From Polymyxa betae A26-41 (taxonomy: Eukaryota; Protista; Endomyxa: Phytomyxea), in assembly GCA_003693705.1 (NCBI GenBank), contig RBZT01000770.1, forward strand, positions 1 to 54,799: DNA of 54,799 bases, read 5' to 3'. Below, one piece after another: positions 39,811 through 43,889 of the stretch (its first letter is position 1; each line of letters starts with the position of its first letter). The notes beneath the pieces were generated by a model that worked only from the letters and a program-made list of their open reading frames with translations, made no database searches and was not told where the DNA came from. Made by a program: the position numbers and the translations under genes.

Positions 39811-40864
39811 ATGGTCAAGTTGTTTGAGCACCAGCACACGTACAAGTTCGTGCTCATATCACTTCAGTTTCTATCATTTGGCTTAGCGAGATCTGTCTAG
39901 GCACCCATGGGCCACGGTCTCAAGCGCGTTTTGGAAGAAATATCCGAATCCAGCATATCCTCACGTCAAAGAAGTAGAACCTGATAACGCTGTGCCTTTT
40001 GTGCATAATTAAGAAAATTGCAGATTGATTGCTTTGAAAGGAGACTAGACACTCACACCGGTGATTTGATATCGCATCGCTTAATAACAGCAGATACCAA
40101 TTTCCCTTCGTTTCTACATTCGGTACGATCAATGTCTCGATGTGCTAATTTGCCTTCAATCTCGATGCAGATCGGTGCTCCGAAATCCGCTTTCGGACTG
40201 GAAGAATCGATCGTCAATGCGCGCGAGCAAAAGCTGGTCCTGAAATCGAGGAATCTAACGGGGTAAATTAGGTTGCTATTTAACCAATCGATCTATTCAG
40301 CGTCATCATTCAGATCAGACTTTTTAGTAGTCGAAGAAACTTGTACTTATCGTCCACATCCAGACAATCCAGACTGGACGTTATACACACAACAGGCTAC
40401 AATTACAGGTCAGAACCAATTCCTTTCTAAACACAACATGACTTATAGCTCTCTCAATCAGGAACCGCTCCTTTGTTTTCTTCAAAGTTTGAAAATCATG
40501 GATTGTCAAGGTTGCAACATCAAGCAAAACAGGTTCAGATCGTCACCACAGTTCGCTTGTTAGCTGAAGTGATTTGCAGGGACTAGACGTGATGGAGAAA
40601 ATCTGTCAAACGATTTCAAATGAAGCAGAATTACTCGCCTCTGAAGCCATGTCTGAATTCGAATCTCTGATTCACGACGTCGAGACTGGGTTTTCCCAGC
40701 TATTCTCCGAACCCGGCAAGGCTACAGCGTCGGCAAACAGCTCTTCGACAAAGCAAGCACCAGGCAAACAAGAAGCTTTCTGTCCAAGAGAACAAAACGC
40801 AGAGAAGCAGAAGCCAAACGAATGTCCCCATTCATGTCCACACGAACGGCCAGCGCCTCGATAG
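39811..40864 (+). CDS. PRELI/MSF1-domain mitochondrial lipid-transfer protein (Ups/PRELID-like), multi-exon
   Basis: MVKLFEHQHTYK|HPWATVSSAFWKKYPNP, EESIVNAREQKLVLKSRNLT, VEETCTYRPHPDNPDWTLYTQQATI and GLDVMEKI. Confidence 0.9.
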
Positions 40865-41420
40865 CCCATTCTCTTTGTTGTTTGTTTCTCTGCGCTGACG
40901 CTCCCTGTCTCAATGTAAAGCCCTTTCTTTCTGAACTTCTAATATTAAATGTTTGGACCAACCCTGGTTATTTGAAGGAATCTGCAATAGGGGCTTTATT
41001 AACAACAAAACCGGCGAATCGCATTACCAGTTCTTGGCTACTTTATATTGATAGCAAGCCAGAAGAAATATCTTATGTAGAATCCCGACATCGTGCAGTT
41101 TAACACCCCTGCGCTCCAATGGCGCTCATTCCAGGAAGACAGATTTACCCAATGTCTTCAACTATCAACTACTTATCCGATTAAGTTTAAGAAGCAGATC
41201 GACAACAACTTTCCGCCACTAAGGACCATAGTTCAAGTTTACCACAACGCATTCTCTTGAAGCTGATGGGTGGAACTATTAAGAAAAATTAGCTTGTGCT
41301 TTTGCCCTAATCAATCCATGCTCATTGATACAGCATACTTGCAGGCAGACGCGTGCCGCCGCCGCATGGAACCACAATAACTAAACCAGTTTCAAGGTTC
41401 CAAAACAGGTTGTGGCGGCG

Positions 41421-43329
41421 ATGGGGTCGGTTTGGACAAGGCTGCGCAATCAAGATCCTGATGAATTGTTCGCTGTAAGCGTGGCGTGGCCCTCTCATAC
41501 TCATAGGGTCACTTCTTTTATGAAATTCACTTTAAAATGGTCACTTTAGTACTCGTCTGCTAAAGTCGTCCGAATTCGTGATAGACGTCTGGGGCTTTTA
41601 CGTCTAGCATTCCAGATCGCTATTGCGGTGTACGTGATCGGTTTTGTGATCATTAAGAACCAGTGAGAAGCGTTCCATTAAGAGATGGTTTGGCACCTGA
41701 ATGCCTTGTAGGCAGTATCTCGAGTATGATGAACCGTCCGGAACCATCCAGACGAGTTTACGTAAACCAGATGGCGCTGTGGATCCTGCTGGTTATCCAT
41801 TTTGTAAGCAATATACGGGACCAGCACCGTCCAATCCTTCTGTCGACACCGGTGCGGCTCTGAAAGGCGTCGATTCGTTCATTCTATTTTGCTAAATGTT
41901 CGTCAGCGGAATGCACTGTCTGGGATGAACAGCAAGTTCAGGATCCGATTTCCGTCGATAACAAGTGCTGAAAGCTGTTTTCGAATCTTTTCTATGCTAG
42001 CTGTTGCCTGATTGTGCCCCCGTTTTGTAGCTTTCGTTCTGGCATATTTTAAGTTTTACACTTCTATCGATAACCTTTCTAATTTCCCATGATAGCATGT
42101 TCATCACGACACGAGCCAGCGTATCAACCGAAGCCCGGGCCTGCTCCGAAGGCGCCGTTTGCGATCATCCCTTCGTAACAACCAGCGGCGTCATTAAATA
42201 TTTCACAGTTGGGGTTGAGAACTTCACGATTGGCATTTTACACAGCTTCGAGGCGAGAAGTTCGTCTTGTTTTCTTTTCTATTATTTTTTATTAATCTCA
42301 TATTTATAGAGTTCCTTGAAGATTCCAGCAAAAAGACTTCCACCGGAACAATGATTTCCGGAACCGGCAATCAGCTTTATGCTGGCACATCGAAGGTTGG
42401 TAGCAGTTTTAGAATCATAAAAACAATGAAATGATTTGTTCAGGATCTTACTGGGTCGCTGGTGTCGAGAGATGGGACCGTCTTACAGAATTTCAATGGC
42501 AGCTCGAACGGGATTAATATCATCCCTTTACAAATGATCTTGGATGCTGCAGGCTTGAACCTAAATGAACCCTGTACCGTTACATTTATATCGATGACGT
42601 CGTTGATAATGATGCTGTTTAACAGCTGATTCGGTGGCAAACGGTGCCAAGCCGGAATCAGTTCGTAACGCCGGCGTAATCCTCACTGTTGAAATCAAAT
42701 ATTCGATTTTGAATAATCAAAAAACATTCGTCATTTCTGCCGATCAGTAAGTTGTGTTGAGACGTATTCATGCCCAGCATCTGACAATATGCTTTCAAGC
42801 ATTCCTGGCTCAGAGTTCAAAGTTGTTACAACTCGAATGCTGAATTCAAGTAAGCGTTATTTTCAGCTTATCGTTTTTTCTGATAAGTACTGAAATCAGC
42901 TCATCGCTTCAATTACAATCGACATGGCGTTCAAATAAGTTTTATCCAAACAGGATCTATATCAAGGTACTAAAATGGATTATGCCTAATTTGAGCGTTA
43001 AATGATGCTGCTGATAGATTTGTTTTTCAATCTTTCCTGATCCAATTATTCACTGCATTGGGTATGCTGGCGATGGCCAACGTACTTGTCGACACAATTA
43101 TGTTGTACATTTTGCCAGAACGGGTCTTGTACGCTTCAGCTAAGGTGATGCATTGTTTGTTCGGCTGTATGACATTTTGCTAAACTGGATGTTGTTGTAG
43201 TACGACGTCACCGAGGACTTCTCTGATGTGAGAGGAAAGAAAGCCCCTGGAGATGTGAACCCCAATTCGATGACTGATTTCGACAAGGATGTGAACGAAA
43301 TGCCGCAAGAACCTTTACCTCAACCCTGA
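41421..43329 (+). CDS. P2X-type ATP-gated cation channel (Dictyostelium P2X-like), about 10 exons
   Basis: Spliced model: MGSVWTRLRNQDPDELFA|YSSAKVVRIRDRRLGLLRLAFQIAIAVYVIGFVIIKNQ (TM1) ...TSLRKP...CTVWDE...MFITTR...VGVENFTI...LDAAGLNL...SVRNAGVILTVEIKYS...EFK...NRHGVQISFIQTGSISRFVFQSFLIQLFTALGMLAMANVLVDTIMLYILP (TM2) ERVLYASAK|YDVTEDFS...QP*. Confidence 0.92.
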
Positions 43330-43393
43330 AAGGCTTACAGTGTTCTACACTGTACGAGAAATATTTTTCGAATCTGAATAGATCAGACATAGG

Positions 43394-43889
43394 TTAATCA
43401 GAATCATTGTAATCTTCCATATCGGTCAAATCCCTAAATCGAGGTAGCGAAATTTCTCTTGTTCGTCGGCGACGTCTACGGCGTGTGCTGTTCATGTTTG
43501 CTGATCTTGGTCTTCTTTGTCGCTCGTTTTGAGCGGTGGATGTTAAGGGAACTATCGAATCCGGATGGTATTCGACAACAACCGCCATTACAGGTTCGAA
43601 AAAGATGTCATCAGTAGATGTGTGAACATCGATCTGGACCACATCTGGGTCGTCCGGATCACGATCCTCAACATTAATAGATTGATTGCTAGAAATCACG
43701 ATAACGGAACCAAACCGAGCCCGACACCTGACCGATAGTAAGATTGTCAGGAAAGTTAAAACTTTCGATTACAAAGGACAGCGATTGGTGACGTTCGCCC
43801 ACTGAAGTATGCAGGACAGGCACATAATATGCCGAAGACATGATGAAGGCACCGATGCAGAGTCTGCATAATCGTGGCAGACAGGGCAT
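43394..43889 (-). CDS. Small orphan protein with a putative signal peptide and poly-Arg NLS-like tract, probably 2 exons
   Basis: ORFs 43689..43889 (MPCLPRLCRLCIGAFIMSSA...) and 43394..43699 (RRRRRRR) can be joined by a short GT-AG intron of about 37 nt; the splice is uncertain. Confidence 0.45.

Follow-up and report, generated by a model that had tools for sequence, protein, structure and literature searches.

P2X channels have been described in animals, choanoflagellates, Amoebozoa, early-diverging fungi and some green algae, and the animal and algal members act at the plasma membrane. In Dictyostelium, P2X receptors lie on the contractile vacuole with their loop facing the lumen; luminal ATP leads to Ca2+ release from this compartment, and the receptors support regulatory volume decrease (PMC3853471). 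The P2X of Ostreococcus tauri, an ATP-gated protist channel with the N-terminal YxTxK/R motif, has Asn in place of the Asp of the second transmembrane segment (TM2), which results in low Ca2+ permeability, and lacks a YxxxK motif (PMC3853471). Here we analyze a locus of Polymyxa betae, located in a stretch of 54,799 nucleotides (nt) that comprises the whole of contig RBZT01000770.1 (assembly GCA_003693705.1; hereafter the window), for which an earlier note made from the sequence alone had proposed a hidden P2X gene. We assign positions 41421–43329 of the + strand, with a probability of roughly 0.88, to an expressed, single-copy, 12-exon gene for a Dictyostelium-type (“Branch 1”) P2X channel subunit.

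The window protein resembles Dictyostelium P2XA–E in its topology with two transmembrane (TM) segments, in a Y-x-[ST]-x-K motif followed by VR.(K/R)DR.LG, in RHG...TG, in an acidic TM2 residue and in YxxxK. It shares with them, too, the absence of the ten vertebrate ectodomain cysteines and, in a profile-based mapping, of several ATP-contact lysines, and it is 32% identical, summed over exons, to the D. purpureum receptor P0012. It differs from the Dictyostelium receptors in four loop cysteines, whose columns are conserved in most relatives, and in a DFSDVR motif that is missing in D. purpureum; there is one gene here versus five in Dictyostelium. When vertebrate P2X1–7 are considered (human P2X4, hereafter hP2X4, 9bqh; zebrafish P2X4, 4dw1), exons 2 and 11 share ~40% identity with hP2X4 over 35 residues, whereas the ectodomain of the window protein is very divergent, with four cysteines in place of ten and, as judged from a profile alignment to hP2X4, three altered ATP-contact positions. 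In this alignment, the vertebrate head-domain insertion is absent from the Dictyostelium-type family. Set against the published description of O. tauri P2X, the window protein keeps the TM2 Asp and YxxxK.

A further group consists of uncharacterised P2X homologues, namely P0002 and P0004–P0010 (JGI/Logan; P0005 is from Ploeotia vitrea), Gaertneriomyces P0015, Fimicolochytrium P0024 and Anaeromyces P0025. These environmental and chytrid sequences are the closest full-length relatives, at 35–39% identity summed over exons, and none exceeds ~39% over its full length. They agree with the window protein in a length of ~390–430 amino acids (aa), in the four cysteines and in the DFSDVR tail.

Structure of the P2X gene

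Exons were translated each in its own frame, split codons were checked singly, and sequence searches were run exon by exon. The + strand of 41421–43329 resolves into 12 exons and 11 GT..AG introns, with consistent phases and no stop within any exon, and the coding length is 412 codons plus TGA. Ten of the 11 introns measure 48–75 nt and one, intron 4, measures 131 nt; the fraction of G and C (GC) is 0.37 in introns versus 0.46 in exons. The earlier note had estimated about nine introns, a number that has to be revised to 11, while its start and stop agree with ours (ATG 41421 and TGA 43327–43329). An in-frame TAA lies upstream at 41382, and the N-terminus that begins at ATG 41421 can be aligned to those of relatives such as P0005. 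The remark that the open reading frame (ORF) track gives mere fragments of the gene also holds, as the prokaryote-style ORF list for the + strand of 41000–43800 contains pieces of 25–70 residues. The features are as follows, each with its support; contigs are those of sequencing runs X3, X5 and X7, and A1 is an alignment, and the profile built from it, of 14 full-length relatives.

40995–41420, + strand: probable 5′ leader, ~425 nt (X3 and X7 contigs start ~101–107 nt upstream of 41100 and are unspliced to 41474)
41421–41474, + strand: exon 1, 18 codons, predicted cytosolic N-terminus MGS...DPDELFA (junction 41474/41550 in contigs)
41550–41662, + strand: exon 2, with YSSAK, VVRIRDRRLG and TM1 (PF00864, PDB and A1 profile matches, the last at 48.8 bits)
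41712–41851, + strand: exon 3, start of the loop, with TSLRKP, whose R-K pair lies where vertebrates have the K-x-K ATP-contact motif, and YPFC containing a conserved Cys (A1 profile, 20.6 bits, positions 52–89)
41907–41964, + strand: exon 4, ECTVWDE block with conserved Cys, Asp and Pro (spliced contigs, family alignment)
42096–42259, + strand: exon 5, with FITTR, a C-x5-C pair, an ENFT sequon and a conserved His (A1 profile, 38.7 bits, positions 118–175)
42310–42395, + strand: exon 6, variable loop segment with the run GTGNQLYAGTSK, common to the fragment P0001 (spliced contigs)
42444–42573, + strand: exon 7, with conserved Gly residues, an LDAAG block and an NGS sequon (A1 profile, 27.6 bits, positions 186–234)
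42626–42746, + strand: exon 8, ESVRNAGVILTVEIKYS with conserved Arg, Gly and Tyr (spliced contigs, family alignment)
42800–42849, + strand: exon 9, IPGSEFK (spliced contigs, family alignment)
42900–42966, + strand: exon 10, R...NRHGVQISFIQTGSIS, predicted beta strand into TM2 (within the 53.3-bit A1 match, positions 288–357)
43018–43144, + strand: exon 11, with TM2, the conserved TM2 Asp and YASAK (PF00864 and PDB matches)
43201–43329, + strand: exon 12, predicted cytosolic C-terminal tail, with DFSDVR and the stop TGA (spliced contigs, family alignment)
43330–43400, + strand: 3′ untranslated end, ~65–70 nt (contigs end at 43392 in X7 and 43400 in X3)

Transcription and splicing of the P2X gene

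Five sequencing runs each contained ~48% of the sampled words of 41300–43400, close to the expectation for a spliced mRNA, and two root metatranscriptomes carried small shares of these words. Contigs of four runs were compared with 41100–43700 (2,601 letters). Those of X3 and X5 (study P2) and of X7 (study P3) are 100% identical to the window and skip exactly the 11 introns; no extra letters occur at the junctions, and the contig coordinates leave no room for added or missing exons. The last junction is additionally present in the root metatranscriptome X1. The spliced X3 and X7 contigs start near 40995 and end near 43392–43400, positions that, being contig ends, prove neither the ends of the RNA nor its strand. 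Because intron-less contigs were obtained from three runs belonging to two independent studies, we conclude that the P2X gene is transcribed and that its RNA is spliced to give a single open frame; this is the opposite of the outcome, transcripts without such splicing, that the earlier note had regarded as fatal to its proposal.

Two variants of the exon model were rejected. An alternative 5′ splice site of intron 3 at 41804 (GTAAGC, same phase) was discarded because all spliced contigs use the junction 41851/41907 and because, besides, the segment retained by the 41851 donor holds the conserved YPFC block. A micro-exon inside the 131-nt intron 4 was discarded because the contig coordinates allow for exactly 59 nt from exon 3 to exon 5, corresponding to the last base of exon 3 and the 58 nt of exon 4. 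An X1 contig spans 42399–42570 ungapped and hence includes most of intron 6 (42396–42443), which represents either unspliced RNA or DNA carry-over in that library. When metagenome contigs were scanned for exact matches to 33 nt of exon 11, none was returned.

Evidence for membership of the P2X family

We searched the whole genome (27,085,814 bases, 27.09 Mb, in 1,001 contigs) in six frames with Pfam PF00864 at E ≤ 10. Two places only were returned, both within the P2X gene and colinear with the profile. Scored as separate peptides, exon 2 gives 24.4 bits (E 1.8e-5, profile positions 3–38) and exon 11 gives 17.6 bits (E 2e-3, profile positions 321–358). The PF00864 cut-off is 27 bits, and the two exons, scored exon by exon, reach 42 bits as a simple sum. 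In a phmmer search of all PDB sequences, exon 2 matched P2X chains and 5f1c_A only, the latter deposited as an uncharacterised protein under an entry title that names a Gulf Coast tick P2X receptor, and the best match was to hP2X4 residues 15–49. Exon 11 matched P2X chains only, aligning to hP2X4 residues 336–369 with Asp on Asp, and exon 5 gave no phmmer match in PDB.

Exon 5, the longest, was searched against 1.84 billion representatives and yielded three matches, P0001, P0002 and P0003. The nearest sequence, P0001 (UniParc UPI0006B2D62D), is a 162-aa fragment with 50% identity over exons 4–7 and no Pfam match; P0002 has 406 aa and scores 77.4 bits against PF00864, and P0003 is a fragment of 153 aa. 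Searches of a word index, started from P0002 and from an alignment, brought in ~25 further proteins, and PF00864 is precomputed for all but the fragment P0001. Full-length relatives score at least 77 bits against this profile, and among the relatives are a purinergic receptor of Dictyostelium purpureum, proteins of chytrids and Neocallimastigomycetes, the transcriptome entry from Ploeotia vitrea and many environmental sequences. Run against the window with tblastn, they align exon after exon, in order, from 41421 to ~43300.

The A1 profile retrieved only P2X purinoceptor chains and 5f1c_A from PDB, with hP2X4 as the best match (E 1.2e-30). In the genome it produced five colinear exon matches at the P2X locus, of 53.3, 48.8, 38.7, 27.6 and 20.6 bits, scoring the exons far higher than Pfam's animal-dominated profile. 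No match occurred outside this locus in the 27 Mb and no paralogue was found; the gene appears to be single-copy. When the 12 exon peptides were added to A1 as separate fragments, they tiled the alignment from the first to the last conserved column, and the window protein carries the same residue in 48 of the 57 columns in which at least 12 of the 14 relatives agree (46 were flagged by a script, and two more were masked by the misplaced tail of another fragment). Among the features kept are DR.LG before TM1, the four cysteines, WDE, TTR, the conserved His, R..G in exon 8, the Lys of SEFK, R...RHG....F...G before TM2, LG.L...V....L...P in TM2, Y...K after TM2 and the DFSDVR tail. Summed over exons, identity reaches 39% with P0002 and P0005 and ~35% with the remaining environmental relatives; it falls to 32% with Dictyostelium and with one chytrid and to 28% with the most distant relative. 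A placement in Branch 1, in which Dictyostelium, fungal and algal P2X group apart from bilaterian P2X (PMC10620158), is suggested by such exon-wise identity, the values being highest, at 28–39%, to relatives that include the Dictyostelium and chytrid sequences.

The single-exon Pfam scores of 24.4 and 17.6 bits both fall below the 27-bit cut-off, as might be seen if the resemblance were due to chance and the locus encoded an unrelated two-TM membrane protein, or if it were an expressed pseudogene. Yet both matches are colinear and unique in 27 Mb, the A1 profile sums to ~189 bits over five colinear exons, 48 of 57 conserved columns are kept, and the frame stays open across 12 exons with all introns removed. 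We consider either form of this explanation exceedingly improbable.

A fold model was made with AlphaFold2 (AF2), not for the window protein but for P0002, its nearest full-length relative, with A1 as the alignment. The model has a mean predicted local distance difference test (pLDDT) value of 77.8 and a predicted template-modelling (pTM) score of 0.67, and it shows long helices at residues 32–56 and 320–347 around a beta-rich body. The top 50 Foldseek matches in PDB were all P2X, the best being human P2X4 (E 2.1e-19, probability 1.00), and the template-modelling score (TM-score) to P2X structures is ~0.6 when normalised to the target, that is, the solved chain. The P2X family claim of the earlier note is supported, in sum, by exon-wise Pfam and PDB matches, the PF00864 scores of relatives, the match of their profile to hP2X4, the fold of one relative and spliced RNA.

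The end of P0001 reads like a run-on into non-coding sequence. It seems that public protein sets contain faulty gene models for relatives of the P2X gene, and surveys based on domains would then miss P2X. P0023 (413 aa) was tried as the window's own product and rejected at just 26–58% identity to the exon pieces aligned; protein database searches returned relatives only, with no entry for the window's own full-length protein, and one search limited to a region gave back its query alone. The contigs encoding P0002 and P0003 offered no usable genomic context.

Hallmark motifs and predicted topology

All of the motifs that the earlier note had quoted are present where it had placed them, within one frame-consistent model. 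YSSAK (41550–41564) aligns with YDTPR of hP2X4, with Ser for Thr in the Y-x-T-x-K/R motif, and is directly followed by VVRIRDRRLG, ahead of TM1 (~41598–41654; Kyte-Doolittle 19-residue mean 2.32). Exon 10 holds RHG (42920–42928) and QTG (42947–42955), and TM2 spans ~43034–43090 (Kyte-Doolittle 2.03). The Asp of VLVDT, with its codon at 43091–43093, aligns with the Asp of hP2X4 TM2 (..VLCDIIVLY..), a position occupied by Asp or Glu in relatives; in rat P2X2 the conserved acidic residue of TM2 is Asp349. YASAK (43130–43144) aligns with YREKK of hP2X4, and its Tyr and Lys are invariant in 14 of 14 relatives. Just after this YxxxK motif, DFSDVR (within 43201–43240 of exon 12; A1 columns 495–500) occurs in the window protein and in at least 12 of the 14 relatives, not in D. 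purpureum; we know of no function assigned to it.

The protein has exactly two hydrophobic segments, in exons 2 and 11 and ~275 residues apart, and two N-x-S/T sequons and all four cysteines fall between them. Homology suggests an orientation in which both termini would be cytosolic and the loop ectodomain or lumenal. The set of ten vertebrate ectodomain cysteines, which make five disulfides, is not found, and the four cysteines present all lie at columns conserved in the Dictyostelium-type alignment. Because Dictyostelium P2XA, which is without all ten cysteines, is still an ATP-gated channel (PMC3853471), the ten-cysteine feature is a mark of the animal branch and not of the family.

The ATP site and the case against the assignment

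Several observations weigh against the assignment to a P2X channel subunit. When scored singly against PF00864, exons 3, 5, 6, 7, 8, 10 and 12, six of them from the ectodomain, gave no match (exons 1, 4 and 9 are too short for Pfam scoring), and the support for family membership consists of exon-wise scores and of the relatives. The basic ATP contacts of vertebrate receptors are Lys68, Lys70, Arg292 and Lys309 (human P2X1 numbering), and we mapped the ATP site through the alignment of the A1 profile to hP2X4 together with the exon placement. In this mapping, Lys67 and Lys69 of hP2X4 are replaced by Ser and Arg in TSLRKP (exon 3), with a Lys one position on, and Lys313 is replaced by Asn in YNRHG, with an Arg adjacent. 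On visual inspection, IPGSEFK looks similar to the PGYNFR block of vertebrates, with Lys in the place of Arg; HMMER aligns this stretch differently, and the equivalence of the GSEFK Lys to Arg295 of NFR (hP2X4 numbering) is uncertain. Finally, some “primitive” P2X homologues, such as DdP2XC, formed no ATP-gated channel in heterologous assays (PMC3853471).

The Dictyostelium-type alignment shows the same departures at the ATP-contact positions throughout. Of the five Dictyostelium P2X receptors, four are ATP-gated though they lack at least two of the vertebrate ATP-contact residues (PMC10620158; PMC3853471), and since functional receptors can lack them, the vertebrate contact set does not define the wider family. 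The earlier statement that basic ligand-binding residues are altered is true relative to vertebrates; read from the alignment, such alteration is the norm for this branch and not a sign of decay. By analogy with the Dictyostelium receptors, the predicted channel is probably gated by ATP.

Alternatively, the gene could encode a P2X-family protein that is not gated by ATP, one that responds to another ligand or that, like the non-functional Dictyostelium P2XC, is a subunit with a structural or regulatory role. Among the four canonical contact positions, two are indeed non-basic (Ser, Asn) in the profile-based mapping, and several cloned primitive P2X homologues give no ATP currents (PMC3853471). 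These positions are, however, equally non-basic across the Dictyostelium-type alignment, four of the five Dictyostelium receptors are ATP-gated, and the pore and trafficking motifs are intact; the gene is also the sole copy in the genome, which makes a degenerate paralogue unlikely. We regard a protein insensitive to ATP as unlikely here and favor an ATP-gated channel.

Putative mechanism and cellular role

The subunit would consist of short cytosolic N- and C-termini, TM1 (exon 2), TM2 (exon 11) and a loop of ~275 residues between them. By homology, three subunits would form a cation pore lined by TM2, which ATP bound in the loop would open; since the genome search returned no paralogue, these subunits would be identical, giving a homotrimer. 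Permeation by Ca2+ would be expected because the TM2 Asp, whose loss lowers Ca2+ permeability in the Ostreococcus channel, is retained. The channel could act on an internal osmoregulatory or acidic Ca2+ store as in Dictyostelium, or at the plasma membrane, and may serve the wall-less zoospore or plasmodium stages.

In soil water, a zoospore, lacking a wall, meets the same hypotonic problem as Dictyostelium, and by analogy with Dictyostelium we tentatively propose a role in internal osmoregulation or at a Ca2+ store, as one possibility among others. Extracellular ATP is a damage signal in plants, which read it with unrelated receptors. A P2X at the zoospore plasma membrane might thus, by analogy, sense ATP from the host root and raise a Ca2+ signal that leads to encystment and host entry; we consider this scenario improbable. 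If it were true, the channel would be a host-finding receptor without a counterpart in the plant, the host plant being devoid of P2X (PMC10620158).

Origin and significance of the gene

The label “zoosporic protist” given in the earlier note fits the source, P. betae. The draft genome RBZT01 comprises 1,001 contigs and 27,085,946 bp at 45.1% GC, with no gene annotation (PMC6328671). The sample of sporosori from roots from which the draft was binned was a mixed one (PMC6328671), and the full-length relatives nearest to the window protein come from environmental sequences, a euglenid transcriptome and chytrids; the gene might hence derive from a contaminant, such as another root-dwelling protist or a chytrid, and not from the plasmodiophorid. 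It lies, however, inside a contig of 54.8 kb, the local GC around it (~0.39–0.49) matches the genome mean of 45.1%, and the published workflow removed bacterial, phage and plant contigs (PMC6328671). Identical spliced transcripts, moreover, are present in two independent studies and in root metatranscriptomes. A contaminant origin is accordingly very unlikely, and we treat the gene as one of P. betae.

The literature that we searched, with incomplete coverage, contained no report of P2X from plasmodiophorids or Rhizaria. The family, its motifs and its wide distribution among protists are already well known, and the gene is useful rather than surprising to a specialist. With it, the Dictyostelium-type branch extends to a further supergroup, in support of an early origin of the P2X family in eukaryotes. 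The gene, expressed, present as a single copy and amenable to cloning, is also a candidate for a part in ATP-gated Ca2+ signalling or osmoregulation while this root parasite, a vector of viruses, is in its wall-less stages. Intron-dense genes such as this one are invisible in an unannotated draft, and its nearest database relative is a fragment without a domain call.

The leader and the flanking transcripts

Spliced P2X contigs from two independent studies both start ~425 nt before the start codon, and the leader (40995–41420) contains six short, out-of-frame upstream ATGs, with upstream ORFs of 1–21 codons. This segment may be a regulatory leader, or it may be an assembly overlap with the 3′ end of an upstream + strand gene (ORF fragments 40018–40864). 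Directly downstream of the P2X 3′ end, separate contigs of X3 and X7 cover the stretch from 43380 or 43443 to 43700, over a minus-strand ORF of 101 codons (43394–43699) with an Arg run, RRRRRRR. A single X5 contig of 3,208 nt joins the upstream region, the P2X mRNA and the downstream region in one record; the neighbouring transcripts therefore abut or overlap.

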